This document shows positions 8,201 to 61,934 of a DNA stretch of 64,000 bases, piece after piece. Position 1 is the first letter of the stretch. Every line of letters begins with the position of its first letter. This stretch comes from Bugula neritina (lineage: Eukaryota > Animalia > Bryozoa), in contig OZ037769.1 in NCBI GenBank assembly GCA_964035545.1, positions 11,624,633-11,688,632 on the forward strand, in the 5' to 3' direction. Both the position numbers and the translations under genes were made by a program. The notes beneath the pieces were generated by a model. That model had not been told where the DNA came from, made no database searches, and saw only the letters and a program-made list of their open reading frames with translations.

Positions 8201-8534
8201 TGCACTGTACCAGGAGTTCTCCCTGGCAGTCTAGCCGATTCAGGCTGTTTGCCAATTGGATTCCTCCTGTCACTCCTTCCACCAGTCCCAGTCCAGCTAT
8301 CCTCTTGCAGTTGACCCTGCAGCGGAGGGTAGCCTGGGACCGTCCGGGTACCGTGCAGTTGTGTACTACCTGGACGCCGCCCACTAGGGGCTGGCCGAAC
8401 TTGTCAACGCAGACAAGTTCCTTGCCAGCCATCATTAATGCAGAATTCTGGAAGTCTATGCGACACTGGTGTTTCTCCAGAAACGGCATGCCCAGAATTG
8501 CGTCCTCCTTCAGATGGCTGACAATAAAGGTCAC
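5223..8534 (-). pseudogene. pol: Gypsy pol (RT, RNase H, integrase) with premature stops
   Basis: RT YLDD; RNase H LDTDAS...ELLAV; integrase HHCC and D,D35E core (VAVDLVGP, IHTDQG, VERNN); GPY motif. ORFs 7080-8534 and 5223-7016 are in the same frame, separated by one TAG. Confidence 0.92.
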
Positions 8535-10423: not shown

Positions 10424-10755
10424 TGTAATAATTCTTCCAATTATTATTATTGAGAGTGGATTCTGTATGTGCAATGGTGCCTTATTCGATTAACAGTTCA
10501 AAGCAATTACTCAGCTGCTAGCGTAATAAAAGAACTATATTTGTTAAATATCCATAAAATATAAGAGAGAGACACATCCAGTATCTAAGTTACATTTATC
10601 GTCTAGTTAGAACCTACTACATTCATCAACATACTACTCCTAACTAATTACTCAGTTCTCCGTAAGCATTCTGCTCCGCAGGGGGGTAGTCACGTGCTTC
10701 AATGTCATTGGCTATTCTACACGTGAACGACGTGTACGCTTCGCTAACCACTACA
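10424..10755 (-). repeat. 3' LTR of Gypsy 2
   Basis: TGTAGTGG start directly after the GGAGGGGGGCGG PPT. Shares CACGTGA..CCCTGCG.AGCAGA..GCTT and terminal ATTGGAA...ACA motifs with 19084-19480. Confidence 0.6.
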
Positions 10756-10893
10756 CCGCCCCCCTCCAGCAGAGAGCCCACTTCCTGCCAAAAAATCAAA
10801 TTGGGGAAAGAAGCGAACCACACACACAAAAATCGATATATATATATATAAAATATACAAAGCATTTCCGATTCTAAAAACTATACCAAAAAC

Positions 10894-11283
<390 letters not shown>

Positions 11284-11500
11284 AAAGAAACATGCAGGCA
11301 ATTGTCCATATTTGCACCATATATACAACAGTTATAAGCGTATACAGCTTAATAGTCATCAGATTGTCTTTCCAGGACGAGATAGTTTGTAGAGGAGGGG
11401 TGCTACTGGCGAGGAATGCCACACAGACGTCATAGCGGGAGAGAGCACGGGGAATCACACAGATCGGGAATGTCGCTTGGAATGGAGTAGAGGCACAGTC

Positions 11501-16800: not shown

Positions 16801-18994
16801 TATACACTGAAAATGCCATTTTTGTTCATGAGAAACTAGCAGCGCGCAGCACTTCACGCTTCAATGAGCACGTAGAGATGAGAAGATATTGGCGCGTACA
16901 TAATAATTACAGGCTTGCTAGCTGGCAGGCTATTTTGAATAACTCGCTTTGGACTTTGTTTATGTTGCACCCATAATGAAATATTGATAGATAACGCAGC
17001 CCTAATGAAGGTTGCTGCTTATTGGTTGTAGTTTAATCTTAGGCTAAACAATTGCAAGTAGGCAACACGCATGCCACCCGCAGAGCAATATTATTCAAGA
17101 GCCTGAACTACATTTTGAGAGAAATTTATGATATTCTTAGTGAGGATGCCCTTAACTATCCTGTGACCTCCTTTTCCTTTTCCGGCCGCAACCTACGCGT
17201 GGGTTGCCAAATAGGAACTGTCGCCGCAGCCAGCGGTATCTCATGACGGACGACTCGCGTCAGGCTTACATCATGAATTCCGCTGCTGAACACGCCGTTC
17301 TACTCGTGCATCAACTTCGCCATAGCCTGGCGATCCTCGTCGTCGTGCAGCCGTGACAGGTCGCCTCGTACAACTCCTTTACGTGTGGCGGAACGATCCC
17401 CCGCTCTCTAGGCGGGCGCTGTCAGGGATCACCCGTCGTGTCTCCCAGCAACGGTCCCACGCTCTCTTTCTGGACAGAGTGGAAACGGCCCAGCATGAAC
17501 CAGGCCAGTAGCTTCACCGACTCCATGAAGGGGTTGACGCACTGCACTAAGATCTCTTCTCGCGCAGTCGGCTGATTGAGACTGCTAGCAAGCTGGATTC
17601 TATTGTGCGCACCTTCCACCACCCCTAGTCCGGAGATCTGGCTATTATTCACTCTACAGTGAATGGTAGCCCGGGAGGGGCCCGGTATCGTACAGTTCCG
17701 TATTACCTGCACGCCACTAGAGGACGGCCGAACTTGTCGACACAGGTGAGCTCTCGCTCGGCCATCAACATTGCAGACTTACTAAAGTCAATGTGACACT
17801 TGTGTCGTTTTAAGAATGGCATTCCGAGAATAGCATCCTCTTCGAGTTGACTGACGATGAACGTCTCACGTATGGTGCAGTCACGAACACGCCCAGTCAA
17901 CTCTATAAGGCCGTAGAAAGGGATGCACGACCCGTCGGCTAGGGTGCCATGCTCTCCTGTATATGGCTCTATCCCGGCTCTTTTTTTGGGAAGAAGGGTC
18001 TCGAAGGCACGACGGCTGAGGAGGTTTGTGGTATACCAGGAGTCTAGTAAGAAGGTGACAGCTCGTCCGGTACCTTGCCTGGTAGGAAATAACTATCTCC
18101 GTGTGGTTGTACCCGTACTTCCCCTGCATGCTCGGCTTCAGTGAGATAGAGCCCTCCTGGCCTGGCCCGCGATTGGCGGGGCTTCTGGCGGCGAGGGTTT
18201 TTCTTCCCGGGGATGGAATGTTTCCCCTTTCTCTCCACAGGTGGCTCGCCCACCAGCTCTGGTTCTGGCAGCCGGTCGAAGCGATTGGTGAGTGGCAGTG
18301 AAAAGGTACTGGGTTGCCTTTCTAGTCGACTGGTCCTACGTGGTACCTGCCACTCTTGAGAAGTATACCGTCGCATCGGTGCGGACGATCCGGGGTTTTC
18401 CTTACTGGAGTCCTCCATTCTTGGCCCACGGGAGGCGGAGACATCCGCGGGCCATGGAAGTTTAACTCCCATTTGTTTTGTGGACACTCCGTACAAAGAT
18501 GTCCTTGGTCACCGCACTCTCAACACAGAGCCGGTGGCCGCGGGGTCTCGTTTGCGACTGCATGGGTCTTTAGACAAGTTGCAGAGTGTCGGAGCGAGTG
18601 ACGATGGCCACCAGCTTCTCTATCATCCCAGTGTCTTCACCGTAGCTGCATGTTCCTGGAGGGGCGTGCGTGGCTCACGACGCAGCTCTTGTAGACCGGC
18701 CTTGGCATCTACAGCGGAGATGCTGAAACGGGCCCGCAGTGCAGCGAAGATTTCATCAACGCTGGTTCCTAGTCCATACGGTTTGGCCTGTTCTGTTGGT
18801 GCCATCCTCAGCTGGATCAGGGCCACTCTGGGTGGCCACTGGGTGATGTCTACCACATCACTGAATTATTGAAAAAACTGCTCTACATCTTTCAGGCCAG
18901 TGAAGGTAGGGGCTTTCAGGCGATACCTGTAGGTCTCCTTCCCTTGTAACACGGGGCCCTCTGAGGCTACAGCAATATCAAGCTCACCCTCCAT
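13845..18994 (-). pseudogene. Gypsy 2 gag-pol remnants
   Basis: Gag-like LKAPTFTG...QWPPRVALIQLR, protease region, YLDD RT with an internal deletion, RNase H and integrase fragments homologous to elements 1 and 3; many stops and frameshifts. Confidence 0.88.
16412..17165. mobile_element. CMC/CACTA-like MITE, copy B, inserted in the RT region
   Basis: Same TIR as copy A (first base C>T) and 2-bp TSD AC. Removing it restores the pol reading EKEVSRQV. Confidence 0.9.
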
Positions 18995-25609: not shown

Positions 25610-28600
25610 ATGGAGGACGGTAAGTCAGTTTTAGTGAACTAAGTAAATATAATGTAGTAGTTTTACCATTATTCAAGTAACTTATATGAAATTAGAGTAA
25701 CTTATAAGAAATTCTACAAACTTAACTCATAATGCATGCTTCTCAAAAAGATTGTGTGACTCAATGACAACTATTTTCTTTCATATCTTAAAGAATCCCT
25801 GCCACACTTTACTTATATAGCATGAAAATATTCATCTATATCTTAGCCGTCATTAGACCAACCCTTTAAGGGTGAATGGTTAGACTATTTTGTTTTATAA
25901 CAAGTTTAGTGCATGCATGTCCAAAAACCTTTCAGATTTCTGAGCTCTCAGTGCCCACGTATTACGCCGGCTTCCGGTTGGCTTCGAGTCCTAGTTACTA
26001 TATAACTAATAGTAATAATTGCATACTTTCGCTGCATGTTTTTTTTCAGCCACTGCAACACACAGATAAATCACTAAACTGACAAAAACTTTCGTACTTA
26101 GAGTACAACTAATGCTCAAAGAAAAAAAACAATTGATACCATTTTATTATTGATATTAAGAGCTAAAGCTACTTCCGTTAGAAATTTTGAGCATGGAAAA
26201 AATAAAATAGCCTCACCTCCACGATGTAATTAGAACGGGTGGTTAGGTACGGCGATAACACGATATTGTTAAAAGAAATTAGCTAAATCCAATGAGTGGT
26301 GAACTTTTCTATAAAACATTACAAATAATTGCGTATTCAATTATGTAACTTACCCTGCCTTACAAATAGATTATCATTACCATAACCGGATATTACTAAT
26401 ATAACGTGTGCCTAGTAGTACTGCTACTACTACTACTAGTAGTAGTCGCTCCCTATCTTTATAAATTCGATTTCATATTCCCATTGGACTCTAACGAACA
26501 AACTTATTATAGTACTAGTTACACTTACTGTCGACATGACTACACCAGCTTGGCTTCAAGTTCTAAAGGCAAATGCAAAAGAATAGTGTGTGAAGCTGCA
26601 ATGTGCTCGTACAAGGAAAGTCACATGTGTAAATGGCCTGCTGATACTGTGTGTGGTGAAAAATGGACCAAGTTTGTCAATATGAAAAGAAAACAATTTC
26701 TGCCTGATAACTCTCGGGCATGTATAAAGCAAAACTCATTAAGGATCGGTATAGCTACAATAATAGTTATCATTATTATGCATTTATAAAAACCCAATCC
26801 TCCCTTTGACTTAAAATATCGGGTAAATCTAACTACAAGTAATTAATACTAATACCTGTATTGGTAGTAGTAATAATAACATTAGTATTGATCAAATATT
26901 TAATTATTTGACTCGAATTTAAAATCATTAATGGTTATCACTTTATTATTATATGAACTGATAGCAATCATCAAATATTTAGCTTGTAATTTAATATCAT
27001 GCTTGCTCCAAAGCTTTAGTAGCGCAAAACTCAGTTATAATAACTAATTAAACCAGGATCAATATGAGTATTGGCATTACCATTACAAAATAAAAATTAA
27101 ATATTATAATAAATTATAACTTATACTTATAGTACCACCATTACTATTTGATTAGTAACACTATAGTTTTTAAAACTAAATCATACTGATACTGTACAAT
27201 TATAAATATTATTATCTAGCTTGCTAATGCCTAAGTATGGTAATTACTGTTAAAGCTTTCAACATAATGTAATTTTACTGAAATACGCATTCTGAAGTTA
27301 TGTAATATTTCTTGTACTAATGTTGCGTTCTTTTGTAATAGATTTTCATCCTCTATTATTCTGAAATAACTGCGTGCGTCAGTATTATAAATACTGTTGC
27401 GTATCTTTTTTAATGCTGTAATTGTGTAGTAGATTTTTGCATGTACTTATTTCCTGTTGCCCGAGATCGGCATTTCGGCTTTCCGAAAGGTTTCCCCGAT
27501 CCTCCGGCCACGCCACTCAAGACCCGGATAGCGTCAGAAGACACAGGATGGCAGGCGCCTCAGAGATCTCGGAGACCGCAAGGTCTACCCGATCCTCCGG
27601 CCTGGCCACTCCACAACCGGTTCGCGAGGTTGCCCGAGGAAGTCGCGGAGAACTCAGCTTACTCGCAAATGTACCCCAAGCTGCCCTCTCGACCTCAGAA
27701 AACCCCCGTTGTCTCTAAGACGATGAGGAGGCCCGCTGTGCGGACCCAAGTTGTGTCTCCCCCAGAGACTAACCGCTCCAGGAGCACCCAACCGTATGGA
27801 AGCAGCTACTTCCTACCCGGAAAAAAATTCGGGTAAAGCTGCCACATTCCTACTGTACACAGGGTGCACTACAAACCTGCTGAGTGGGCGTCTCTTTGAC
27901 ACCCTTGGCGCCCGAGAGCGGGCGAGCCTCGAGCCGTACGAAGGTGTGGATGGTACGTTGGCGGACGGATCGTGCATCCCTTTTTACGGCGTTATTACGC
28001 TACCTGGACGCGTCCGTGATCAAGTGATTCACGAGACGTTCATAGTCAGCCAGCTGAAGGAGGACGCCATCCTGAGAATGCCATTTCTGGAGAAACACCA
28101 GTGCCGCATGGATTTCCAAAAGTCGGTGGTGGTGATGGCTGAAAGGGAACTTGTCTGTGTTGACAAGTTTGGCAGGCCCTTGGTGGGTGGAGTCCAGGTA
28201 CTGCTGGACTGCACGGTTCCAGAAAGATCCCAGGCGACTCTCCGCTGCAGAGTCAACTGCAAGGAGATCGCTGACCTGGGGGTGGTTGAGGGATCGCACG
28301 GAGCGATCCGACTAGCAAACAGCCTGAATCGGCAAGAGCTCCTTGTGCAGTGTATCAACCCCTTCACGGAACCTGTCTGATTATCGGCCGGAGCGCTGGT
28401 GGGGAAGTACCACTCCATCCAGGACGCGGATGTGGGTCTGGCACTGGAAACAGTGGCCGATACCCAGGGAAACTCCTCTCGCACCAGCCGAAGCGCAGTT
28501 CCGGAGCATATGGCTGACCTGTACGATGGAGCGTGTGGCAACTGTACGAGTAGTACTGAACGCCAAGTACTGGCTCAACTACTCGCGGAGTACAGTGATG

Positions 28601-31600
28601 TCTTCAGTCGTGGCGATGAAGACATGGGGCTGACTAAGGTTATCTCTCACGAGATACCCCTGGCAGCCGGCACCACTCCCATCAGGCAGCCCACCCGGCG
28701 TCTAGGCCCGGAGAAAGAGAAGAAGGTGAGCCGACAGATGCAGGATCTTCTCGACCGGGATCTGATTGAGCCTGCCCATGGTGCGTGGAGCTCTCCAGTA
28801 GTCCTGGTCAAGAAGAAGGATGGTAGCTGGAGGTTCTGTGTGGACTACCGCAGACTCAACAGCGTTACCATCCAAAACGCCTACCCTCTCCCATGGATAG
28901 ATGAGTCTCTGGATGCCCTCGCGGGTAGCAAGTACTTCAGTACTTTAGATCTGCTTAGCGGGTACTGGCAAGTGCCCTCAGTCCTGATGCCCAGGACAAA
29001 GCAGCATTCATTACTCGCGACGGGCTCTGGAAGTGGAAAGTACTGCCATTCAGACTAACGTCCGCCCCGGCAACTTTCCAATGGCTCATGGAGCAGGTCC
29101 TCAGTGGATTACACTGGAAGACCCTCCTCATCTATCTGGACGACGTCATTGTCATCTCCCCAGACTTTTCGACTCATGTCAGTCGTCTGCAAGAGGTCTT
29201 TCACCATCTCCGGGCAGCTGGACTGAAGCTGAAGACCTCCAAGCGTGCACTCCTGCAGCCGGAAGTCATGTACCTGGGCCATGTGGTTGGCCGTGACGGG
29301 GTCTCTACCGACCCGGAGAAGGTACAGGCTGTGAAGGAGTGGGCTGTTCCCCGTGACCTACCCAAGCTACGAGCATTCCTAGGCCTTGTAGGGTACTACT
29401 GGCAGTACATACCTGGCTTCGCAGGGGTGGCTCAGCCGTTAAATCGACTGACCGCAAAGGGTGTTCGGTCGCAGTGGACACAGGAGGAGCTGCAGGCATT
29501 CGACCACCTCAAGCAACGGCTAATGGAGGCACCAATTCCGGCGTATCCTGATCCAGCCAAAGAGTACATCCTGGACACTGACGCCAGCGACTACAGTGTG
29601 GGAGCTGTTCTGTCTCAAGTCCAGGGTGGAAGTGAGGTGGTCGTGGCTTACTACAGCAAGACTCTTGCGGCCGCCGAGAAAAACTACTGTACCACTAGGA
29701 AAGAGCTCCTAGCAGTAGTCAAGGCGGTCAAGCACTTTCGGCCATATCTGTATGGGAGAACGTTCCGGTTGCGAACAGACCATGCATCACTGATATGGCT
29801 GTGTAAACGTGCAGAGCTCTCGAGCCAGGTGGCTCGTTGGCTAGAGATTCTTGCCGAGTTCTCTTACCGGATAGAGCACCGTGCAGGCCGGAAGCATGGG
29901 AACGCCGACGACATGAGCCGCCGGCCGGTAGAGGACTGTCAGCAATGCCTGCACATTGAGAAGCGGGACGGGGACCCGCTCGCCTTGACGTGGAAACAGA
30001 GTTAGGGGAGGGCACCGTCTACTGGTGGGAGCACGGCCATCTTCGGACCGAAACTCACCCAGACGACGTCAAGGCACTCCATGCCAACCCCACTCTGTAC
30101 CAGAATGTCAAGGAGCTGCGCCGACTCCAGGAGACGCTACCCGGCGCGGTAGCGGACATCTTCCGGGCTAAGAAAGAGGGCCGACGACCTAGCGGGGAAC
30201 AGCAGCAGCAGGGAGACGTTGAATTCCAACTCCTCTGTCGTCGCTGGGATGCCTTCAAGGTCAGTCCTGATGGCCTCCTAATGATAACGTTAGCAGCAGA
30301 CAATCGTCAGCAAGAGAGGGACCGCGTCGTCTGTCCACGCGCCCTCCGGCGGGAATTGATCTGGGACACCCATAAGCAGGCTCATTCTGGAGTCAGTCGG
30401 GTCATCAGGTGTCTGCGGCTGCGTTGGTATTGGCCCGGAATGACTCGAGACGTACGACTGCGGATACGGCAATGCGAGGTCTACCAAGCTAGCAAGCATA
30501 GCCGCCCCACGGAAACCACTGGTCGACGCCGGCTATACGCTGGTCGACCATGGCAAGTAGTGGCGGTAGACCTCGTCGGGCCTATGCCGTTATCCGCCAG
30601 AGGAAACACCTGAATACTGGTGCTCACGGACCACTTTACCCGGTGGGCAGATGCTCTGGCTATTCCAGAAGCAACAGCCCCCACGGTGGCCCGGGCTCTG
30701 GACCAAAATGTGTTCTGTTACCTCGGATTACCCGAGCAGATACATACGGACCAAGGTGCCCAGTTTCAGTCCCAGCTTATGGGAGACCTCTGCCGGATAT
30801 GGGGGTGAACCAGAGTCGGACCACCCCATATCACCCGCAAGGGAACGAAGTCGTCGAGCGGAACAACAGGATGTTGGGTGACGCCCTCAGGAGCCTGCTC
30901 CTTGGTCGGGGTCAGGAAGAATGGGACATGGTGCTGCCGCAAATCATGTGGGCTTACCACAGCACACCGCACTCCGCCACGCAGGAGACCCCAAACTTTT
31001 TGATGCTAGGCCGGGAGACACGGGTTCCGGAACACCTGACCTACCATGTCCCCGCCCCCGAGTCACCGGTACATGAGTACGTGGGGGGTCTGATAGAAAT
31101 CATGGGCAAAGCTCATGATGCACTGCGTGCCCAGCAGTGGCAGACCCGCACAGAAGACTCAGAAGAGCCCCCGTTTTACCAGGTGGGAGACTGGGTTTGG
31201 ATGGTGAGCTACCGAAGGCGACGCGAACAGTCGGCTAAACTCCAGCCCAAGTTTCTCAGTCCCTACTGCGTAGTGGAGGTGCTGCCCAACCACACGTACC
31301 GTGTGGAGCGCTCTAGACAGGTCTCAGTTCAGAGCGAGCAGCGCCTGAAACCTTACCATGCTAGCCCAGACGCAGTGGGTCAGGCTCCACCCCTCCTGGA
31401 GCCCAACTGCCAGCCCAACCATCGGGGAAGGACCACCCAACCCCGAGAGGTGGAAATTGTCGTCCCAAGGGAGGCGGATCAGGAACAGGCCGCCCTGCTG
31501 GAACAGCTTGAACAGCAGCAAAGGCAGGAGCGGCGGCAGCAGCAGCAGGCCCTAGGGCCACCACCCCTCCCGGGGGAGGACACCCCTACCCGTATTACGG

Positions 31601-34600
31601 GTGAAGGCGGGGACCTCCCTACGTTGGCAACTGAAGAACCACTGGCACTACAAGTGCCTGCCCATCCATTGAGAAGTCAAAGAGATAGGAAACCATCCAG
31701 ATATCTGGCAGACTATCACGTAGGACACATGGAGATGTTTCTACAGAGGAGTGGTACACCCAGTACGGGTAAAAACTCCGAGTCTCAGTTGCAGAATAGC
31801 CCTGGCAGTACCAGACTTCTCCAAAAGCAACAGCCCCCAGACCAGCACAGTCACCTGGACAACAGATACCCAGCTCTTTCGGGTAATGTTGGCCAAGGTA
31901 GGTAGCGATACTCCATACCCCTGACCGACTTGGAACCCCCTCAAGAGAAGGAAGATGGGGCCACGTCCCTGCTACCTGCCCAGCTGATTGGAGATGGCGC
32001 TACCGCAGCCACCACCCAGCCTCTACGGGTAGCACTGGCAAGACTGGGCAAAGAGCCTGGAGCACCAGTCAGCCAAATAGGAGAGAAAACTCAGCCGCCC
32101 CAACCTTATAATTGCCCCGTCACCGGCAAAATGTGGCACCTCCTTACCGCGAGTGCGTCCTGGATAGTGCAATCCAGGCCTGGTCCAGTATCCTTGACCG
32201 ATGTACTGAAGAGATAGAAAGCCTGGTGCACCACCTCCAATGGCCAAACCGGACAATTAGGAGCCGCCGGCATTAGCCACCCGAACTGTATATATTGTGG
32301 GTACTATTACCATCTTATATTATTGTGATACGTGTGATTAATCATAATACTTTTCTGTTAACCGCATATTTTTCTACTTTTGTGAAATTATTGTTCTATT
32401 ATCTAAAAGGGGATGCTTTTCGATGGGGGGGAGAATGTAATGGATTCTCATTCTCTATTGTCCTGAAATAACAGCATGCAACAGTATTATAAATACTGTT
32501 GCGTATCGTTCTTAATTCTGTAATTATAGTTAAGTAAGCTAGCTTGCTAATGCATAAGTATGGTAATTACTGTTAAAGCTTTCAACATAATGTAATTTTA
32601 CTGAATTACGCATTCTGAAGTTATGTAATATTTTTTGTACTAATGTTGCGTTCTTTTGTAATAGATTTTCATCCGCTATTATTCTGAAATAACTGCGTGC
32701 GTCAGTATTATAAATACTGTTGCGTATCTTTTTTAATGCTGTAATTGTGTAGTAGATTTTTGCATGTACTTATTTCCTGTTGCCCGAGATCGGCATTTCG
32801 GTATTCCGAAATGCCGAAATACCGATAGTCGGCAGTTCGGGCTACCGAAAGCCCCGAAATGCCGAAAGTCGGTGTTTCGGACTTCCGAAATGCCGAAGGT
32901 CGGCGTTTCGGACCTCCGATCTCGGCAACAAGGGAAAAACCCTATCTCTTGCTGTATATAAAAGCCAGCGAGCTCCAGTGTAGTTCAGTCTACTGCTGGA
33001 GCTCACTCGCAGAGGACCTTCAATATTATATTATTCGACTCAATGAAGATTTCTTCAACTGTACAACACATCTTGTTCTCTCTAACAAAGAGTATGTTCA
33101 GGCACTAGTTCTATTCAACCCACAAAAAAATCACACATTGAAAGCAACGTCATGACTATCATCTTCATCTTGATACAATAACAACTCAAACTGATAGCCC
33201 ATTACTGTAGAGACTAAAGACAAAGTGATTACTTCAGAAATCTCAATCAGTCAATGACAGCGTGAGACTGAGTGTGATTCTCATAGTCGTACTCATTGCG
33301 AATGTGATTCTCATTCTGCTCTAAGTATTCTTCGTCAGAGCCAGATATGCTCATATTGATATTTATATTGTATTTATATGTTATTTCTGTATATAATATT
33401 ATATTAGGTATAACTTTATTACAATTACACTGCACAGACTCAGACACGGGTAAGTTGAAAGCTATATATTTGATGCCGTGAAAATTTTTTATGAAATAAA
33501 AACCTAAATTCCACAAAAAAGCACCAATTGGGGGGCCAGACAGCAGTCCAATACGTGAAAAAATGTTAAAACTAAGGTTACATGCAACGGAAAATATAGC
33601 CTATACTTATTTTCTGAATGTCTTACAGGCGGCATTTTATCTATTTCTCGCAATTGCGGTGTAGTACGTCACAGGCAGGTGATAAAAATTCTCAAAGTTT
33701 TTTGGTCATATATGCACTAAACTTGTCATAAAACAAAATTGTCTAAACCTGAAACCCTAAAAGAGTGTTAAAATAATAGCTAAGACATGAATCAATATTT
33801 TCATGCTATATAAGTAAAGTGTGGCAAGGATTCTTTAAGTTTATGCATCTTTTTAGTTCATTTTTTAGAACTAATAATTGAAATATAATAAAATTGTAAT
33901 CAAGAATTATATGACCACTAACTATATTACAAGGTTTATTAGATTTACATTGCATCGTATTTCTAACTTGTAGAGAAAAGATATAGAATATGGTTTAACT
34001 CTGTCAGTATAAAAGAATCTGATAGAGAATGGGTGAAGATTATTCCAGATAAAAGCTACACAATAAATGGGTTGAGACATGAAAGTAAACGTCATACCAT
34101 CACTCATGTTATACTGTGGTTTAGCATTCCTCCAGATATTCACAATCTCTTCCCTCATCTCACACATTTGTTGTTGAAGAGTAAAAGCTCATCTGCCGGT
34201 ATTTTCAGGTAATGAAACTCCTCATAATATATTGTATTATTTAATATGTTGTTTATAAAACTTCTTTACCGAAATGTGCAGGTGTAGCATGAAATTATGT
34301 CCTTCTTCACCTCTCAGTTTCTTAATATTTATATTCTGGTAGTAGAAAGTATTATATATCTGCCTGCTATTTTACAGCTTATCTAATGTGTCTGATTATC
34401 TACCAGATGACATGTTCAATTCTTTACAGTCACTGAAAGAGTTGCATGTCAGTGGCTGTAGACGCAGCACTCTACCAACGAGGTATGTACTGTATATGTA
34501 ATTAATTATACTAGAATGAGGCTGTATGCTGGCCCATGAATTCAATGGAATATCTACCTCATTATGTAAATTGTGTGCATGTTATAATATAAGACTGCAT

Positions 34601-37600
34601 TAATAGCAGATTATGCAGTGTAATGAATATATTGTAACATTAAAAGGAATTATATACATGTCTGTTATATTACAGCATAACTCAACTGAGAAGTCTTGAG
34701 ATACTGAATGTGTCAGGGAATTATCCGTCTAATAATCTACCAGATGATATGTTCGAATCTTTACAATCACTGAAGGAGTTGGATATCAGTGGTTGTAGTC
34801 TCAGAACTCTACAAAAGAGGTGAGTACTGTATATATAATTATTCTATGTTGACAGAGTACCAACTCTCAACAGAGTCCTACATTGGCTGAATTTCTCTCC
34901 ATCTAAAACCAGAATTATATTATGTTTTGCATTTAATGCTTTGTTCTGTGTAACATGATAAGAACCAACTCTCATTGTATGCTATTCTCAGCTTTTGTAA
35001 CACTGAGCTGCCTTGAAAGTTTCCACTTTGAACTTTCATATTACTAGTTTCTACATAACTGAACAGTTATTAGAATATCTGCTCTATGGAACTCTTCAGC
35101 TATGATGAACCAGTACACTAGAGGGATATGTTTTTTAATTTGAATGTATAACAGTGCTGAGTTTGCATATGCCTTGTTTTGAATATTTCATAAATTATTT
35201 TAGCTTTGCATATACAATGTTTTATCCCAGGATATAATGTATATTGTTAATTATCATTGTTATTATTAATGTTTTTTTCCAAGTAACTTGTTTTGTTTGC
35301 AGTATTTAGTATAATGTAACAAATTTTATCGTGCAATCTCATTATATTTAATATGTACAGAATAATCATCTTACAACAATAGAAAGAATTATATACATGT
35401 CCATTATATTACAGCATATTGGGGTTGACAAATCTTGAGATACTTAATATTCGAGAGAATAATCTGTCTAATAATCTACCAGATGATATATTCGCACCTT
35501 TACAATCACTGAAGGAGTTGAATATCAGTGACTGCCAACTCAGAACTCTACCAAAGAGGTGTGTACTGTATATATAATTAATTATACTAGAATGAGACTG
35601 TAGGCTGTCCTAAGTATTCAAAGGAATATCTACCTCATTATGTAAATTGTGTGCATGTTCTAATATAAGACTGCATTAATAGCAGATTATACAGTGTAAT
35701 GAATGTATTGTAACATTAAAATGAATTATACACATGTCTGTTATATTACAGCATATCTCAACTAAGAAATCTTGAAATACTAAATATGTCAGGAAATTGG
35801 CTGCCTGATAATCTACCAGATAATATGTTCAATTATTTACAATCACTGAAGGAGTTGAATATCAGTGGTTGCCAACTCAGCACGTTACCAAAGAGGTGTG
35901 TACTGTATATATAATAATTATAGTTTATAGTAAAATGAGACTGTATGCTGGCTCATGAATTCAAAGGAATATCTAGCTCATTATGTAAATTGTGTGCATG
36001 TTATAATATAAGACTGCATTAATAGCAGATTATACAGTGTAATGAATATTATATTGTAACATTAAAAGGAATTATATACATGTCTGTTATATTACAGCAT
36101 ATCTCAACTGAGAAATCTTGAGATACTGAATGTGTCAGGGAATTATCCGTCTAATAATCTACCTGATGATATATTCACATCTTTACAATCACTGAAGGAG
36201 TTGAATATCAGTGATTGCCTTCTCACCACTCTACCAAAGAGGTATGTACTGTATATATAATTGTTCTATGTTGTCATAGTAACAACTCTCAACAGAGTCC
36301 TACATTGGCTGAATTTCTCTCCATCTAAAACCAGAATTATATTATGTTTTGCATTTAATGCTTTGCTCGGTGTAACATGATAAGAACCAACTCTCACTGT
36401 ATGCTATTCTCAGCTTCTGCAACACTGAGCTGCCTTGAGAGTTTAAACTTTGAACTTTCAAGTTACTAGTTTCTACATAACTGAACAGTTATTAGAATAT
36501 CTGTTCCATGGGACTCTTCAGCTATGATGATTCAGTAGACTAGAGGGATATGTTTTTTAATTTGAATGTATAACAGTGCTGAGTTTGCATATGCCTTGTT
36601 TTGAATATTTCATAAATTATTTTAGCTTTGCATATACAATGTTTTATCCCAGGATATAATGTATATTGTTAATTATCATTGTTATTATTAATGTTTTTTT
36701 CCAAGTAACTTGTTTTGTTTGCAGTATTTAGTATAATGTAACAAATTTTATCATGCAATCTCATTATATTAATATGTACAGAATAATCATCTTACAACAA
36801 TAGAAATATTATATACAAGTCCATTATATTACAGCATATTGGAGTTAACAAATCTTCAGATACTGAATATGTCAGGGAATTTTCTGTCTGATAATCTACC
36901 AGATGATATGTTGGAAACTTTACAATCACTGAAGGAGTTGAATATCAGTGACTGTAGTCTCAGAACTCTACCAACGAGGTATGTACTGTATATATAAATA
37001 ATTATACTAGAATGAGACTGTATGCTGTCCTAAGTATTTAAAGGAATATCTACCTCATTATGTAAATTGTGTGCATTAATAGCAGATTATACAGTGTAAT
37101 GAATATTATATTGTAACATTAAAAGGAAACATATACATGTCTGTTATATTACAGCATATCTCAACTGAGAAATCTTGAAATACTAAATATGCCAAGTAAT
37201 AATCTGTCTAATAATCTACCTGATGATATGTTCACATCGTTACAATCACTGAAAGAGTTGAATATCAGCGGCTGCACACTCACCACTCTACCAAAAAGGT
37301 GTGTACTGTATATATAATTATTCTATGTTGACATAGTAACAACTCTCAACAGAGTCCTACATTGGCTGAATTTTTCTCCATCTAAAACCAGAATTATATT
37401 ATGTTTTGCATTTAATGCTTTGCTCGGTGTAACATGATAAGAACCAACTCTCATTGTATGCTATTCTCAGCTTCTGTAACACTGAGCTGCCATGAAAGTT
37501 TAAACTTTGAACTTTCAAGTTACTAGTTTCTACATAACTGAACAGTTATTAGAATATCTGTTCCATGGGACTCTTCAGCTATGATGAACCAGTAGACTAG

Positions 37601-40600
37601 AGGGATATGTTTTTTAATTTGAATGTATAACAGTGCTGAGTTTGCATATGTCTTGTTTTGAATATTTCATAAATTGTTTTAGCTTTGTATATATACAATG
37701 TTTTATCCCCACATATAATGTATATTGTTAATTATTATTGTTATTATTGTTTTTTCAAGTAGCTTGTTTTGTTTGCAGTATATAGTATAATGTAACAAAT
37801 TTTATCGTGCAATCTCATTATATTTAATATGTACAGAATAATCATCTTGCAACAATAGAAAGAATTATATACATGTCCATTATATTACAGCATATTGGAG
37901 CTAACAAATCTTCGGATACTGAATGTGTCAAGGAATTGGTTGTCTAATAATCTACCAGATGACATATTCACATCTTTACAATCACTTAAGAAGTTGGATA
38001 TCAGTGGTTGCCAACTCAGCACTCTACCAAAGAGGTGTGTACTGTATATATAATTAATTATAGTAGAATGAGACTGTATGCTGTCCTAAGTATTCAAAGG
38101 AATATCTACCTCATTATGTAAATTGTGTGCATGTTATAATATAAGACTGCATTAATAGCAGATTATACAGTGTAATGAATGTGTTGTAACATTAAAAGGA
38201 ATTATATACATTTCTGTTACATTACAGCATAACTCAACTGAGAAATCTTGAGATACTGAATATGTCATGGAATTTTCTGTCGGATAATCTACCAGATGAT
38301 ATATTCACATCTTTACAATCACTGAAGGAGTTGGAAATCAGTTACTGTAGTCTCAGGACTCTACCAAAAAGGTGTGTACTGTATATTATATTCATAACAT
38401 AATATTTATCGTATAATCAGGCTGTATAATGTCCTAAAAAACTCACTTTCCCGCCTCTTCATTTATAGCTTTGATCTTTCATCACCTCAGCACATAAATT
38501 ACATTTAGAAAAGAGATGATTATTTCTAAATTGCACTGCATCCAGGTAGTACTAGGGCTAGGCTGATCTTTGTAACCACTGAAATCAAGAACTAGGATAC
38601 ACAACTTTGTATATGTAAACATTTTTGATTAATGTTCATACCTATTTAAATTAAAGCTTAGTTTCTGCATGTATAACACCTGTAGTGCATATATGAATAA
38701 CAGTGAGTGGTTTGAATATAAAAGGTTTAATTTGCACAAACAGCAGTGGGTATTTTTCATGCTTAGAACTTCATATTTTTTAAAAAAAAAGAATCTACAG
38801 TCAAACTACCTCATTCTGGCAACTTTATACAACAAGTCATATTCTATTGATATTTAATCAAGATGACTTTAAACGGAAAAAGCATATTGGGTTAAATTTT
38901 AATTATTCCTGACCTGAATGAAACTCAAAGTAGTTGCAAAAATGCTGTACTAGCGGATGATAGAATCAGTAGTCTAATTATGTGATATTTGTGTATCAAG
39001 TTTTACCATAAATTTGATGTTTTACACGGTCAGTGATTTGCTTTACTCTGTTCTCTAAACTTTAGCTCACAGTCATTTTATTTTAGTATGCAGAACCTTA
39101 AGAATTTAGAGAGGCTCGACATATCAGGCAATGAATTCACTAACATTCCACCTTCTGTGTACACATTGAGAAGTCTGCAAGAGCTGAATATATCCCACAA
39201 TAACCGTCTGAAGTCTCTAGACCCTGAGATACTACAGCTGAATCAGCTTCATGCACTGAAGGCAGAAAAGTGTGATGCTCTCACAACTCCTCCACTAGAA
39301 GTGCGTAGAGGCGGATTAAATGCTGTGAGACAATATTACAAGGATTTAGCTAAAGGCTCCGGAAAGAATATCCCATTCGCTACAGTTGCTATACTTGGTA
39401 ATACAATGGCAGGAAAGACAAGTTTAGTTAGAACACTGCAAAGCCGTGAAAGAAGAAGAATTTTGACTGACAGAAGCCCAGAAGCTGACGTGGATGAGAC
39501 AACACAAGTATTCAATGTTCAAGAAGTTGAAGTAGATGGCACAGTGCTGCGTGTCCTTGACATGGGGGGACAGGAAGTGTATCACGCGACATATCAACTC
39601 ACTTTGAGACAAAACTGTATACCAGTTGTTGTAGTCAATATGGAAAAATATGACAGCCTTTCTACTAAGTTTTCCAGTAGAGAGGCTGTCAGAAGATTAG
39701 CCTTTGACTACATGTCTCACCTCTATCTGGCCAATCCAGCTCTTGGTGCACCTAAGCTCATCTTGACTCATAGAGACAAATTTACGAGCACCAAATTTCT
39801 AGAGAAAAAATCATCGTTTCTCAACTTGGTGAATCAAATAAGTGCTGAGATTGTTAAAGAAGAGATAGAGGTTGGTGGCGAGTTTTGTCGAATTCAACAT
39901 TTCAAGGAATCAGCAGGTGGAATCTTCATTGATGATGATATTTATGAAGTTGGAATCAATGATGAATATGAAGTGTTCGACCAGATCAAGAAATCTCTTT
40001 TTCAAAGCAGTCAAACTTTTGTCAAGCCTCTGCCTTTGGTTTGGGAAAAAGTGAATGAGAAGGTTCTGCTTTTAAAATCTGGCTACAACTCATTCTGGTT
40101 TGTTCTGGCTATGCTAAGACAGCAAAATCTACAACTTGAATTTGGTCAGCTGGACATTATTCTTACTTACATGCACGATTGTGGTAAGATTCTGTGGTAC
40201 AAAGATCTGGATACCCTGAAGCCTTACATCTTCCACAAGATATCAGAAGTTACCAAACTTTTAACAGTTCTGTATCATCATGATCCCAGTGTGTGGAACA
40301 GCCGACATGATCAGTTCCTGCCATTTCTTTCTGGTCATAAAACCTTTGAGATACAAGATTTCGAAGCAGCCGTAAGTCAATTCACTGAAACCAGTATTTT
40401 AACACAGAATCTCTTAAGCTATTTGATAAAAACTCAGACCGAATTCAGGAACCACAATGATGTGGAAGTTGCTATTTGCCTTCTCAAGACTTTCCACCTG
40501 CTGCACGGTCCGTTGCATCATCAATCTGGTGATGAATCCACCGAATTGTGTTTCATTGCACCGCAATTTGCTAGAGAATACTTGAATATTGAGTACCAGT

Positions 40601-43600
40601 CACCAAAACGCATGTGCCTCCATGTTGGAATTCTGTTCAATGGCCTAGCGTTACCACACTATGTTTACCATCAGATGACTGTTGGTTTACTAGAGCGGTT
40701 TCCTGATGAAGTTGCTGATATCAAAGTCAAGAGAAACGGGGTTGATGTGTATCAAGATGAAATATACACGAGGCTGGTACACGACTACAAGTCAAGAAAA
40801 GTGCTTTTATTTGTCTCATCAGATGCAGAAAACATCTGCAAAATGTGGCAGATATTGACTACTTCTACTAACAGCATCCTCAGGCATGTTTTAGAAACAT
40901 GGCCCGCATGCAGACCAGTCCCAACAGTTCACTGTGGTCACTGCTTGTTGCTAGGCAACCCTCATCCTATAAAGAAAACATCACCTCAGTGGTGTCTTCG
41001 CTCTGTAAACTCGGCTGTTCCTCGTGTCAAATCATATAAAGGATCCTCAACAATCAAGTGTCAAGGAGAAGTAATCCCTGCTGCTTTACTCTATCCATGT
41101 ATGTTGATTTCGGTTAATTAATTAACTCGTTTATTTATTATGAATATATAAATAAGTTCTGGGCCATGATGCTGATTTACTAACATTTAGACATCGTGGT
41201 TGTATATGATATATATTTTGCACTCTGAGATATACTTTATATAATATAAATGTGTAAAAGATCTCATTGAATCCTATATAATGCAGCTCATAAAGCTCTT
41301 TCTCTTTCCTCTATTGATAAGTATTTTATGCACATGAATATTTTCATGCGAAATATATTCACTCAAACTGTAATTGCTGCCTAAAAATCTGTAAGTTATT
41401 GAATATCGCATAAACAAGTTTTCAAATAGTTTGCTTTATTGCATAGCAAAGCCTTATTCCATGTTATCAAATGAATATTTCTTTTTACCACCTCCCTTTA
41501 ATCACAATCTGAAGAATCTTTGCTTTATTTTGTCATTAAACCATCTTATCAAATTACAGGTGAGACTCTGTCAGAAGCTGATTCTGAGAAGTTTAAAAGT
41601 GCTGTCAGTGAATTGATTGCCAGAGGAGAGAGAAATCAACCAGATACTTCAGGTAGAGAAATGCATATTATTATATATATGGCTGAGCCACTAAATCTAA
41701 CTCTTGGTAAAAATGGAGATGTGTGATTTCTAGATGTTGCAGTGCCTTTAGTTTGGTTACCTTTGCAGTTCCATTGTATGCTAGACTACAACTTTATAGA
41801 GTAACACTTTTCAAAGTAATCTTTTGAATCTAGAATCCATAGCAGTACCTTTGTAGGCTGTTTAGTTCCAATTCCTTGTTTAAATCAATCATACATTGTA
41901 TAGAATCTAAATTTCAAGACATTAACTCTGTTGCACTAAAAAACTGGTACATGATTTTGTGTTCTCCAGTTGAAGATAACGACCAATCAGATCTGAGAAC
42001 TGAGGAGGTTACAGCCAATGATGATCTGAGTGATCTCTCTGATGAAGACGAGTATTTGTACCCTGATGAAGAGAAAGGTGTGCAAATGAGGTTCATAAGA
42101 CCCAAGCTGGAAACGACTACAAACTTGAAAATCAAGCAACTTTTTTCCAACACCGATAAGGTAATATTTCATATAATCTAACATAATATTTAAAGGCAAA
42201 CAAGTGAAATACATATGTAAAATATTTTTATGTAACAAATCCTTATTTCCAGTTTATAACTGCAGGTGTACAGTATGACACGCAAGAGAGGAAGAGCTCT
42301 GATAATAAACAACAAGAACTTTGATAAGAGACCAGATCTGTGTAGGGCAGGTTCAGATGTTGATGTGAAGAATATGTCTGTAATGTTGAAGGATTTCAAA
42401 TTTGATGTTGTGACTCACACAGATCTGAAAACAGAGGTAAGCATGGTGACAGTTTCTACTGAATATAAGCCTATGGTTTTCGTATTGGCATGTAAACATG
42501 TTGTAAAGCTTGGTAACTAGTCAATATTCTGAAAGCCCAATACTCTGAAGGTTCATTGCTCCGAATCTGGTTGTTTATTAAAATAGCACTGTTATTATTT
42601 TTATCTCCTAGAGACCTAGACCTATATGTATTGCATTACAATTAGTCAAGAATTACCTAAAGTAATGTTTTATTTAAATAATTTTCTCTAGTGCTTTATT
42701 TCTATTTCCGTACTGTTTATTTTTTGCATCATCTCCATAACAAATTATGTAACTTGAGAGTTGAATGTCCTGCATAAATTTCAAATTGCACTAAGCTCAG
42801 TATATATGCATGCAAAAATATTGGCAAAAAAGCCTGATTTATAAATTGTTATTCTTAGTAGAGTCTAATTATAAAAAACTGTGCAGTAGTCTCGATGACT
42901 TTAAAAGCTATTCTACTTCTACAACTTATTACTTTAATATATGGTGCAACAACTTGTTTCAGTTAGTGCGTACTAGACAAATATATGTGGACTAATAGAC
43001 CTTCGGAGCAATGGGTCTTTGGAATATTGATTCGTTTCTGTGAAGCTTGCTGACTCAGCATTTACCAACGCATAGTTAAAGGCAGTTTCTGTAGGAAATT
43101 CTGCTTTCTACAAAGTGCAGGTATCTGGTAGAATAAAAGCATTATTCAGCTAATTTAGTAACCAGCCACAAAACTTTCCAGGCTATTCTGTCTACCATCA
43201 AAGATGAAGTTCAACGTGAGGAACATGAAGATCTGGGATGTCATGTGTTGGTTATAATGACTCATGGGGGTGTAGGTGGTTTCATTTATGGAGTAGATAT
43301 GAAGAAAGTGAGTCTCACTCATGTGTATGACCTGTTGACCCCACTGAACTTTCCCGGAATGTCTGGGAAACCAAAGATTGTCATTCTGGAAACTTGCAGT
43401 GGAAGTAAGTGTTTCCTTCAGTAGAAAGTGCTTCGAGAGAGGATTGAAAGTAACTTGCAGATTACTCTAAGCTTTATCTGCTATCAATTTAGTTTATTGC
43501 TTAATCTGCTATCAATTTAGTTTATTGAATAATTGTAATTTAGTAATGGATGGGCAATTTTTTGTTTTAAGTGGGTTTTTTGTTTAAATAATTGATAAAT

Positions 43601-46600
43601 CAGCTGTAAGATTTATGTCAATCATGTTAAACCAGATATTTGGCATCACATAAAGAATATATTGATTCTAAACTTGTATAAAATGATATCACAGCTAGGA
43701 TAGATGTTGGGAACAGAGGCATAGACTCAGCACCCAATGTTGGACAAGCTCAGATAGAGCATGCTGAAATCATCTCACCCTCCCCTACCAGAACCCAAAC
43801 CGTTGAGAATACCGAGTTTAAGAATAAGAAGAGCTCTGGTGATTTGCTAGTAGCTGAATCTCCCACTGAGTGTGAGTAGCACAGCTATGCTTTTTTAATA
43901 AATCCTCATAATTGAAAATAGTCCTACTTTTCTCAAGTAATAGGAGTGTTCACAATGTTACTTTGTTTACCATTAAGACAATTTTGGCTTTATCATTTCA
44001 CAGTAAAGTAAATAATTTGCACTAAGTGGTGGCCTATGCTCACTTGGCAGTGTCTATAAGCATAACCAGTTTATTTCACAGCTGGGATAGATGCTGGCGA
44101 CAGAGACATAGGCCAAGAACCTGGTGTTGGACCAGCTCAGATAAAGGATGCTGGAATAGTGTCACCTTCTCCTGCTGAAAAACAAGAGATTGAGAATCCT
44201 GAGTCTAAGATTAAAAAGAGCTCTGATGATTTGCTAGTAGCTCAATCTATCCCAGAGTGTGAGTAGAGCAGCGATTGATAATTTTAATAAATCGTTATGG
44301 TTAATGTCACTATATTCTTCAAGCATTATAAACACAGATAGTTTTTTGCAAATCACTTCTTCTGTACATCTTTGAATGTGCATTTCACAATAAAGTGAAT
44401 AGTTTGCATTCCATACTGGATGAAAAAAATTAATATCTACTAAAAAATGAGCATTTGTTTCACAGCTGGAAAAGATATTGGTGACAAAAGCATAGACCCA
44501 GTACCTGATGCTCTACTAGCTCAAAAAGAGGATGGGAAGACAGGGTCGCCCCTTCCTGTTAGAATTCCAGGAGATAAAGATGCTGAGGCTATGACCAGAC
44601 TGAACTATGATGATCTGCTAGTAGTGAAAGCTAGCATGGAGTGTGAGTCTACTCAGTGTTGTATTTCTGTATGCATCTTCCCTGAACTATATTTACTAAC
44701 TGAATAATAGACCTCATAGAGGGTGAAGAGGTGTACTGGGGAATGCTACATATTTTTGACAGGGGTGGGCAACTTCTTTTGCTCATGGCCAAGTTCAGAG
44801 GTCAGCCAAAACAAAGAGCCACGTGGTTGTACACTTATTAAATTTGCTGTGCTGTGCTGTGCTGTGCTAATCAGAACAAAAATGACAGTTTTTACTTATC
44901 TTAAGGATTAAAAGGGTCACTGAAAAATGGGCAAAGGGCCACAAGTAGTGAATAGTAGACCACATGGAGGGTCAATAGGTGTACTGGGAATGTTATAGCT
45001 CTGTAGTCAGTATCCACTACTTGCAACACTATACTGATTGTTAATATAATAACCTGGCCAGGTTCCATATTCTCATCACGATGTGTCCCAATTTAATCTC
45101 TGTTTCAGTATTTCAGTGTCAATATTAACTATTGTAGCATTTACATCAAAGATACATCCTGTGTATGGGTCGCTAATGGTTAGAGCTCTTGTTTCTTCAA
45201 TGTATAGACATTCCGGTCACCATGATCTCTGCACTATATTCAAACAAGTAAGTTTACCAGTTTAATTTCTGTAATACAGGCTCCCTTAGCCTACCCCAGA
45301 AACAACGGTTGTATTGGTTTTGTAGCAATGATGAAGGACATTCACTTGTTCCAAGCTTCAAATAAATGATTTTTCATTTGATGTTTAGAAACAGTTGCAT
45401 CCATTGAAACCATATAACCATAATCATAGGATCATGCTAACTGCAACCACAAACTCAGCCTTATGAACCTCCATTTGAATAGTCTAAAGTCATGGTAACT
45501 CAGTAAACCAATCTCTCCCATGACTAACCATTTTTCTCCCAGTATAGTTACAGCAGCCATCACAATGCAACAAGCAAACGTTGTTGTATAAAGAGAATAG
45601 CATGTCAATAGGTGGGCGTGTCTTGTAGTGTATTGCAAAAGACATAGGGCCCTTTCGGATTCCCTATACGTAGCCTACTGGGCTCATCGATGAATTTGCT
45701 CACTTTCTCTCTGTCGAGTACCCTTCGATGAGCTTCTTTTTCGATGGGGTATGCGTTCGCTACTGAATGCATCGCGTAGGGGTGCACGTAGCACCCATCG
45801 AGTAGAGCAATTAATTTTTGATATGACCTTCGACCTTAACTGGCTGCACAAGTATTGACATTTATTTTCATAGCACACACTGGGCGGGAACTACTAATTT
45901 TAATAGTATTATCATTATTATGCGCCCTTATTCCAGCTTTCTCAGTGAAAAGATGCTAAAAAAGTTTAAACCTTACTATCAGCATGTTGTTTTTATCATG
46001 TAGCTGAGCGTGTTTAAAATTTTGTCAAATAAAGGTAAATTATTTATTTTCTGTTCTCAAGAGACTTTGAACCTTCAAAACTATGCAATGGTTTGCTGCC
46101 CACAGTAGAAGTGAATTCCCTCAAATCATTTTGTGTTACAATATTTTGCTTGACTACTTTATGGTTTTTACCCAACTTTGATGTACTTTCAGTATGAATA
46201 GTTAACTCTGCTTGCTTCATTCTACTGCTAGAAAGCTTTTAGTTTAATAGAGAGGTAGCTCTCCTTGAAAGCTTTAGCGTAGGGCCACACGACGCGTTTT
46301 ACACGTTCGTGATGTTCGAGAATACACGCTAGTGACCTGCCTTATGCCCATGACACACTACAGTCGAAACGGCATTATGCCCATGACACACTACAGTCGA
46401 AACTCGACTGTGGCGGCCATTTTGGAGCTGCTCGCGCATGTCTTTAACATCACTTCCTACTTTTTGCTGGTCACACTACAGTTCACTACAAACGATGAAA
46501 GCTAACTGTCTCTAGCCCCGCAGTAAACTTTTAACCAATAGGAATTTTGTAGATTAGTTTCTGCGGTATCCACAGCAACCAAAAAATCAAATTTAGCGCA

Positions 46601-52248: not shown

Positions 52249-52336
52249 CTATATGTATACACAGACACATGCACCTGTTATATATATGTAGGTTTTATAT
52301 ACGTAAATGCATCTGCAGACATATGTAAGCAATGAC

Positions 52337-52340
<4 letters not shown>

Positions 52341-52429
<89 letters not shown>

Positions 52430-52440
52430 TATATACATAC

Positions 52441-52525
<85 letters not shown>
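52341..52525. repeat. (TA)n microsatellite
   Basis: Direct inspection. Confidence 0.97.
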
Positions 52526-52527
<2 letters not shown>

Positions 52528-53414
52528 GGTTTTATATACATAGACACACCTGCATAGACACACGTACATATGTAAGCAATGACATTAATGCATCATTCAC
52601 CTTTTCCATTTTGAGATCAAAATTTGACTCAATAACACAATGTCATGACTCAACAATATGTGACTCATATAACATGCGACTTAGCGCATTAGTGTGCTGC
52701 AAGTGATGCAACAATTGTTTTATCAAAATCATGGTCCTTGTGACAAATTCACTCAAGCACACGCTTATATGAGTGGATAACTCCAAATTTTTTGACATTA
52801 ACATAACTAATGATACAATTATATTATTGGATAAGACATATATTCCAGCTGTCCCTTATGAAGGCAATGACTAAAATATCCAGCCATGCAGTAAAACTAT
52901 TATATCATTGGCTTGACATTTATTATAAAAAGTTATAAAAAAGACATATAAAAACTTGCTGTTGAATGCTGCATAAAAGTATGAAGGTTGCCTAACAGCT
53001 GTTGTAACACCACGTACTCAGTATATTGTAGCCAGGTAACTGCATAGCTAAGTTATTTTCTTTAAAAAAATTAGGTTCAACTGGAAAAGCATCCTGCATC
53101 ACTTATAAGGATATCATAACAGGTCGATGCTGTCGACTTTTAGAAATTTGCAATTATATAACCCTCTATAACACAGACCCAACATTTTAGACTGAGAACT
53201 CCTTTAATATTATAGACTGTGAAAACAGTATATTTTGAAAAATTGGCTGAGAAATATGCCTCTTCTAAGAACGAAGTTTAGATTATTTGCAACTAAATTG
53301 TGATATATTATGGTACCATGGAGAAAGTTTCACCAACAAATGTTATTAAGTGGACTTCCAGTACTAACCAATGAACCTGAGCAGTGACATTTCACTGGAG
53401 GTCACGACCTGTAA

Positions 53415-56180: not shown

Positions 56181-58383
<2,203 letters not shown>

Positions 58384-61600: not shown

Positions 61601-61934
61601 AACTCAATTTTGGGTTAGTTACGAGTTTTTTTTATGTGTCGGAGTAACGATAGCTTTAGGTTCCTTAGTTGTGTTCCACACAAGACTGATTAGCAGAGGG
61701 GAGACGAGTATAGAGAAGCACATTAACAATAAGGAAAGACGGCGAGTGAATGAACTCGGTAAGACCTACAGAAATCCTTATCACTTTGGATTCACTCGTA
61801 ACTGGAGAATGTTTTTTGGCATAGAAGAAGGTACTGGTAGATCCTGGCGTCACGTGCTCCTTCCATCAACTCATAAACCGACAGGAGATGGCACAGCTTG
61901 GAAAACATTTTCAGCCACCTCCAAGTTCGACTGA
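58630..61934 (+). CDS. ZDHHC16: DHHC palmitoyltransferase, ZDHHC16-like (exons 58630-58740 and 60954-61934, about 363 aa)
   Basis: CKSC...[42 protein letters not shown] and NPY.FG...NW motifs. The N-terminal ADT-ILDPVY...[11 protein letters not shown] and C-terminal [12 protein letters not shown] segments resemble ZDHHC16. Confidence 0.88.

Follow-up and report, generated by a model that had tools for sequence, protein, structure and literature searches.

A tandem array of two-repeat LRR exons in a putative LRR-Roc-COR-caspase gene of the bryozoan Bugula neritina and its probable growth and diversification in the germline

The DNA analysed here, a window of 64,000 nucleotides from the bryozoan Bugula neritina (assembly GCA_964035545.1, contig OZ037769.1, forward-strand positions 11,624,633 to 11,688,632), contains an array of short exons encoding leucine-rich repeats (LRRs), which lies ahead of a Roc GTPase exon and of caspase exons on the same strand; the gene is referred to as W, and positions are those of the window unless another locus is named. 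By a pattern search for open segments with AG before and GT after, nine exons were recovered on the plus strand, one of 105 nt and eight of 144 nt, all of phase 2-2: the first module e1 (34378-34482, 105 nt), e2 (34676-34819), e3 (35415-35558), e4 (35752-35895), e5 (36098-36241), e6 (36835-36978), e7 (37155-37298), e8 (37891-38034) and the final module e9 (38228-38371). A 144-nt exon encodes 48 residues, equal to two LRRs, and e6 by itself scored 27.6 bits against Pfam LRR_1 (cut-off 20.6). Two types alternate, namely alpha (ITQLRSL type, as in e2; also e4, e5, e7 and e9) and beta (ILGLTNL type, as in e3, which follows a long intron; also e6 and e8). Every array exon is preceded by ..T(T/C)ACAG and followed by GT, and each has a sole open frame with one base over at the 5′ end and two bases at the 3′ end, a serine codon being split as AG|C at each junction. 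Nine stop-free exons with identical splice contexts in DNA of 32% GC are far beyond chance.

The introns separating these exons measured, in order, 193, 595, 193, 202, 593, 176, 592 and 193 nt (S,L,S,S,L,S,L,S), comprising a long class L of ~593 nt (34820-35414, 36242-36834 and 37299-37890) and a short class S of ~193 nt (34483-34675, 35559-35751, 35896-36097, 36979-37154 and 38035-38227). The L introns of W were 95-96% identical to one another and the S introns 81-96% when scored globally over the longer copy, or 91.5-96% over aligned columns, and only the first 21 and last 32 nt were common to both classes. The L introns stand before the three IL(G/E)LTNL (beta) exons and the S introns before the I(S/T)QLR (alpha) exons. 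Three alpha-L-beta-S units of 1.06-1.08 kb align with a mean column identity of 95%, at 34676-35751, 36098-37154 and 37155-38227 (U1, U2 and U3); e4 is an extra alpha module outside these units, and a 346-nt period was also called in the array by Tandem Repeats Finder. An earlier note on this DNA, made from its letters, had described eight 144-nt exons and one 105-nt exon of phase 2-2 throughout, two near-identical intron classes in the above order with a unit of about 1.08 kb, and long introns ahead of IL(G/E)LTNL and short ones ahead of I(T/S)QLR exons, and all of this was borne out.

The surroundings of the array were searched exon by exon. Ahead of e1, an LRR-cap-like coding exon (33974-34208, plus strand, putative 5′ border) reads ..TTCAG|GTAATG at its 3′ end, ending in phase 2 like the array exons, with GTAATG as donor; it had no match in Pfam, and the open frame 33967-34209, preceded by a conserved TAG/CAG acceptor, is kept in two upstream paralogues, A and B. 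About 715 nt past e9 lies a 677-aa open frame (39088-41121), corresponding to a large exon at 39087-41098 (plus strand) with further LRRs at its start, a Roc GTPase and a COR-like region, which is entered in phase 2 at TTTTAG|T ATG CAG, matching the array, and has a candidate GTATGT donor at 41099. Its Roc domain matched PF08477 with 34.3 bits (cut-off 27) over residues 100-193, including the P-loop GNTMAGKTS; the frame itself had no Pfam COR-A match, and it aligned over 94-99% with proteins carrying COR-A, PF16095 (P0031, P0032 and P0035). Pfam matches to LRRs were obtained in e6 and at the start of the Roc exon, and phase-compatible splice sites would link e9 to the Roc exon. Farther downstream on the same strand, caspase exons (Peptidase_C14, PF00656) were located with approximate borders at 42260-43421, the e-values being 9e-10 at 42260-42460 and 4e-11 at 43137-43421.

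The nearest named proteins to the Roc-COR exon were 'MFHAS1 homolog' proteins of Watersipora subatra, at 32-37% identity and with 99% of the query aligned. LRRs at the N-terminus and a caspase at the C-terminus are present in a pair of RefSeq proteins of W. subatra (~1,415 residues each), both of which align to the Roc-COR exon and one of which has COR-A. Because of the Roc and caspase matches and of these W. subatra proteins with LRRs and caspase, the array is read as the LRR arm of a predicted LRR-Roc-COR-caspase gene in an animal of bryozoan type. As a separate observation, three similar open segments of the approximate form ..GIDxGDRxI....SP.P.....DLLV..S..ECE lie at 43695-44642, between the exons for the large and small caspase subunits.

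The gene has many relatives. From 193 first-look candidates, at least 66 paralogues of the Roc-COR exon were scored in the genome, with 56-92% identity and stop-free in all but four. To count LRR modules, we took the 10 kb ahead of 20 Roc-COR paralogues plus one further array, 21 loci in all. The 144-nt phase-2 exon with two LRRs and a TTACAG acceptor was the building block in 21 of the 21 sampled paralogues, and the number of strict modules ran from at least 1 to 9 per locus, each count being a lower bound as arrays may extend beyond 10 kb. Some arrays contained runs of modules with identical protein sequence (four in L004, for example), evidence of very recent tandem duplication. A JGI contig encoding an 89%-identical Roc-COR protein (P0001) had no LRR exon in its mere 582 nt of upstream sequence.

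The donor sites of the nine array exons were GTGTGT in five, GTATGT in three and GTGAGT in one. The count of five GTGTGT donors given in the earlier note, which called them weaker, was correct. An argument from weak donors to optional exons fails, since GTGTGT was found in 60 of 85 family modules from the 21 loci (GTATGT in 17 of 85); as the family norm, it is ruled out as a mark of optional exons.

Two members of the family lie on the same contig upstream of W, gene A (L001) at ~44 kb and gene B (L002) at ~93 kb, and the three genes differ in module number: B has three LRR exons (first, alpha, L intron, last), A has six, with two alpha-L-beta units and one beta fused to the next alpha, and W has nine, with the three units and the extra alpha. 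Array length is hence not invariant between W and the upstream paralogues, the comparison that the earlier note had called for. The first exon differs as well, e1 being in frame and 39 nt shorter than the 144-nt first exons of A and B. In A, the fusion exon (L001:6170-6425; contig positions 11614169-11614424) joins a beta without its last 30 nt to an alpha without its first two bases, through a deletion of ~225 nt, and is a frame-breaking exon of 256 nt; gene A would accordingly be in frame only if it were skipped. The L intron was present only in W, A and B, the three tandem paralogues on the contig, by which a dispersed repeat is ruled out as its nature; derivation of the L class from an S intron enclosing a decayed exon is ruled out as well, the interiors of the two classes being no more alike than shuffled sequences. 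An exact 23-mer of the L intron had no match in metagenome contigs. The first L intron of A also carries an insertion of ~335 nt (L001:5510-5844) that is absent from all other L introns.

These neighbours allow the amplification to be dated in relative terms. The Roc-COR exons of W and A differ at 4.8% of nucleotides with a synonymous divergence (dS) of 0.089, and those of W and B have a dS of 0.17. As identities among the L introns of W and A, five in number, range from 94 to 96.5% (84-86% for the B copy), the amplification of the 1.07-kb unit would be about as old as the separation of W and A. For the difference in unit number between W and A, genes otherwise 95% identical, we infer unequal crossover in repeat register as the source.

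The modular design itself is older. In the W. subatra gene for XP_067935480.1 (L027, OY755161.1), the modules are 141-nt phase-2 exons with a TTTACAG acceptor and a GTGAGT or GTAAGT donor, and the exon is cut at the same point of the repeat, after ..LPE in W. subatra and after ..LPK in B. neritina. Since boundary and phase are shared, the two-LRR phase-2 exon design predates the divergence of these two bryozoan lineages. That locus holds five intact modules, four of which are used in the RefSeq protein; the omitted fifth (L027 ~27355-27495) is 141 nt long, open and flanked by canonical splice sites. Its omission hints weakly that modules may at times be left out, but may equally be a choice of the gene model.

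Within the W array, whose exons are 78-90% alike, exons and introns have diverged to very different degrees. In an alignment of the three units, variable columns made up 62 of 288 in exons versus 52 of 761 in introns (Fisher p=1e-10), and pairwise divergence between units was 11.8-17.4% in exons versus 4.4-4.6% in introns. Between U1 and U2, synonymous change was seen at 5 of 72 codons with conserved amino acid, near the intron rate, and replacement differences at 28 of 218 sites versus 34 of 766 in introns (p=3e-5); this excess of replacements over introns is therefore taken as a signature of positive selection on the protein.

The location of the replacements was followed family-wide in 90 unique modules from 24 loci, by approximate parsimony counts on a tree, with the split serine numbered as residue 1. 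In the first repeat, replacement changes clustered at the x positions of LxL-xx-N-x (residues 12, 15 and 17), and in the second at the equivalent positions around the conserved C (residues 37, 39, 40, 42 and 44). The pooled ratio of replacement to synonymous rates (dN/dS) was 2.06 at these eight x positions (binomial p=2e-5) and 0.61 at the other 39 sites, and the N:S ratio of the eight sites differed from that of the rest with p=6e-19; the eight exons compared in the W array vary at the same residues. An AlphaFold model of a natural W. subatra repeat region (single sequence, pLDDT 68, pTM 0.70) displayed five-residue strands at a spacing of 23-24 residues, two per module, on the xLxLx segments. 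In LRR proteins, the x residues of the strand and the loop that follows line the concave, ligand-binding face. Selection at equivalent LRR sites has been reported for brown algae (PMC3341825, PMC11378527).

Taken together, we consider it probable that the array is the LRR sensor arm of a ROCO-caspase gene, amplified recently in the germline unit by unit, diversified by selection on its binding surface, and spliced in series. W would be one gene of a large, tandemly clustered LRR-Roc-COR-caspase family whose arm is built from the standard 144-nt phase-2 module. The array would have grown in the germline by unequal recombination that copied whole units of exon plus intron, including the two-exon unit of 1.07 kb now present three times; its exons would then have diverged about three times faster than the introns, with replacements on the solvent-exposed x positions and the following loops, as expected under diversifying selection on the binding surface, to which some exchange between modules may have added. 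By default, all nine exons would be spliced in series into a single long solenoid, and receptor diversity would lie between paralogues and alleles, not within a cell. We infer ligand binding and an immune or cell-death role of the gene. The proposal of the earlier note that such an array generates diversity by crossover or conversion holds for germline gain and loss of modules (9, 6 and 3 in W, A and B; 1-9 in the 21 sampled paralogues), and for conversion the evidence is only suggestive.

Several points weigh against this account. An in-frame ATG of A is absent from W, and the start codon of W was not located; a gypsy-type element lies ~2 kb upstream of W; serial constitutive splicing of W is an assumption; and the parsimony site test is approximate, short recombining repeats violating its assumption of a tree. 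Moreover, synonymous differences were found at 14 of 63 codons with conserved amino acid versus 6.8% of intron columns, an excess beyond what selection on residues alone can give, and it needs either module exchange or introns that were homogenised after the exons had diverged.

A candidate trace of such exchange is in e7, the alpha exon of U3, which is the unit nearest to B. It has six synonymous states that are absent from e2 and e5 and shared with exon 2 of B, which it matches at 141 of 144 positions with zero synonymous differences; the L intron of U3 likewise has five states uniquely in common with B versus 0-1 for the other L introns. The simplest reading would make U3 the oldest unit, with the remaining alpha exons either of partly different ancestry or altered by module exchange; alternatively, introns may have been homogenised while selection held the exons apart. 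Since ~300 nt of the intron adjoining e7 and exon 2 of B is also ~92% alike, the likeness of the two exons is explained nearly as well by orthology plus constraint. In a single-breakpoint mosaic test on 15 exons, the best Bonferroni p was 0.054 with 16 private differences, a borderline result. Gene conversion between modules is thus suggestive only.

Among other explanations, the one that survives best is that the modules are optional cassettes, many receptor isoforms arising from a single gene by regulated skipping as in brown-algal ROCO genes; we think it possible though unlikely. Any subset of the exons would keep both frame and fold, all being of phase 2-2 and of two whole LRR turns each, and exon choice could be loose with splice sites so nearly identical among them. 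The omitted W. subatra module, intact and with canonical splice sites, and the 256-nt exon of A, which would need skipping for the frame, point the same way, as do the up to nine annotated splice variants of brown-algal ROCO genes with 72-nt phase-2 LRR exons (PMC11378527). However, the GTGTGT donors give no cassette mark, none of the W. subatra RefSeq names seen carried an 'isoform' label, and Rfam gave no match over 33-46 kb. Between introns there was no long complementary element, no inverted repeat exceeding 28 nt at 82% complementarity, that one being an internal palindrome of the L intron, and the DNA holds no sign of a regulated choice of exons. Combinatorial splicing of the array is possible in principle though unproven, and its germline diversification is well supported.

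The array could also be a neutral by-product, a recently amplified repeat in a redundant and possibly decaying member of the family, with no diversity-generating role of its own. That no start codon was located in W and that it lacks the ATG of A would fit such decay, and so would the retroelement directly upstream, the shortening of e1 by 39 nt and the frame-broken fused exon in the neighbouring A. Nevertheless, in DNA of 32% GC each of the nine exons is open and has canonical splice sites, the 677-aa Roc-COR frame is intact, and replacements exceed intron divergence and lie on the binding-face positions, unlike uniform decay, which makes this explanation unlikely.

Far less probable is somatic diversification, in which recombination or conversion between the near-identical introns or exons in somatic lineages would reshape the array inside a colony, much as lamprey receptors are assembled. 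The 593-nt introns that are 95-96% alike and the three direct repeats of 1.07 kb are good substrates for recombination; yet the germline gene is complete and spliceable, the window holds no flanking bank of cassettes devoid of splice sites, and the diversity observed is between fixed germline paralogues. Finally, although repeated 1-kb units are a classic hazard of assembly, an artefact made by mis-assembly of reads from several paralogues has next to no likelihood, given that divergence between units is 4-5% for introns and 12-17% for exons with each exon unique, that the contig spans 17.7 Mb in an assembly of 321 contigs, and that the same design recurs in the assembly of a second species.

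A bolder idea, to which we give a small chance, joins two of these: cells or zooids might express different subsets or orders of exons, through combinatorial skipping or through somatic recombination between the 95%-identical introns. If true, a single ROCO-caspase gene would supply a whole set of sensors, each coupled directly to a death protease, and this would be an animal recognition system of a kind that has been proposed to date for brown algae alone. Our preferred reading stays with germline amplification, diversifying selection and serial splicing.

Other features of the window were recorded beside the gene. Gypsy-type long terminal repeat elements are present in three copies, at 4000-8700 (minus strand), 13900-18500 (minus) and 27400-32000 (plus), with reverse transcriptase, RNase H and integrase identified by Pfam; their GC content is 54-59% versus ~33% in the region, and long open frames are present in the first, whereas the second and third are fragmented, the third being the element ~2 kb upstream of W. 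A 260-aa open frame at 61152-61934 matched the DHHC palmitoyltransferase family (PF01529, 1e-32) and is probably an exon of an unrelated neighbour gene. A (TA)n-rich tract of 1.3 kb at 56621-57956 has a higher period of 452 nt and a GC content of 12%, and long (TA/TATG)-type microsatellites at 10740-11460 and 52250-52710 give YIYIYI frames on both strands.

Known systems that diversify somatically or by exclusive exon choice have defining features that the array lacks. Lamprey variable lymphocyte receptors (VLRs) likewise carry concave-face diversity on LRR modules. Their germline gene is incomplete and is assembled somatically from flanking cassettes without splice sites, whereas W is complete in the germline, its modules are ordinary AG/GT exons and no stray LRR modules were seen elsewhere in the window; the analogy with VLRs drawn in the earlier note fails on this account. 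In Dscam-type clusters, alternative exons encode the same part of a domain and are chosen by docking and selector RNA pairing in introns, whereas the exons here are serial repeats of a solenoid and no pairing elements were found. Closer in domain order is MFHAS1/MASL1, an animal LRR-Roc-COR protein with N-terminal LRRs, then Roc and then COR, and the W. subatra relatives are carried under 'MFHAS1 homolog' in the automatic annotation of NCBI. Known MFHAS1 genes of animals are few per genome and are not known to have a caspase, in contrast with the family here, which numbers at least 66 genes and combines a C-terminal caspase with a hypervariable LRR arm built of cassettes. Repeated phase-2 LRR exons, taken as a trace of exon duplication, also occur in vertebrate glycoprotein-hormone receptors, as cited in PMC11378527. 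The receptor exons are old, constant in number and not hypervariable, whereas here the duplication is recent, with introns 95% alike, and the number varies between paralogues.

The closest counterpart is the LRR-ROCO family of brown algae (Ectocarpus and Saccharina; Zambounis et al. 2012, PMC3341825; Teng et al. 2024, PMC11378527), in which each LRR is encoded by one 72-nt phase-2 exon, exon number is variable, selection acts on the concave face and splice variants have been annotated. The comparison, already made in the earlier note, proved apt: both have an LRR arm ahead of Roc-COR made of equal-length phase-2 exons, an exon number that varies between tandem paralogues and diversifying selection on the concave face (by an approximate method here), and both are proposed as variable immune receptors. 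The differences are that a 72-nt exon with one LRR there stands against a 144-nt exon with two here (141 nt in W. subatra), that the exon border falls before GxxPxxL there and after ..LPK here, and that only the bryozoan array has two exon types, alpha and beta, in alternation and two intron classes that together form a 1.07-kb unit, a caspase past the COR and an animal host; alternative splicing is established for the algae, and the introns of the bryozoan array, unlike brown-algal ROCO genes, showed neither reverse-strand nor decayed modules. Because module size, exon border, intron classes, caspase and kingdom differ, an origin independent of the brown-algal arrays is argued for.

In the literature searched, neither such arrays nor ROCO-caspase families were found described for bryozoans. 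Cassette-like, fast-evolving LRR arms of ROCO proteins are known in the literature from brown algae only, where they led to the proposal of a third type of variable immune receptor, independent of the NLRs and TLRs of animals and plants and standing beside them. The same building principle is now met in an animal, in two bryozoan lineages, with a caspase in the same gene and in a family dozens strong. Genes of this kind, in an animal that lives in colonies, are obvious candidates for sensing pathogens or for telling self from non-self, with the death effector already built in. Beside the algal arrays, the W locus offers a snapshot of the mechanism, with a clean higher-order unit, two dated neighbouring paralogues, and introns still 95% alike around exons that are already 12-17% apart.

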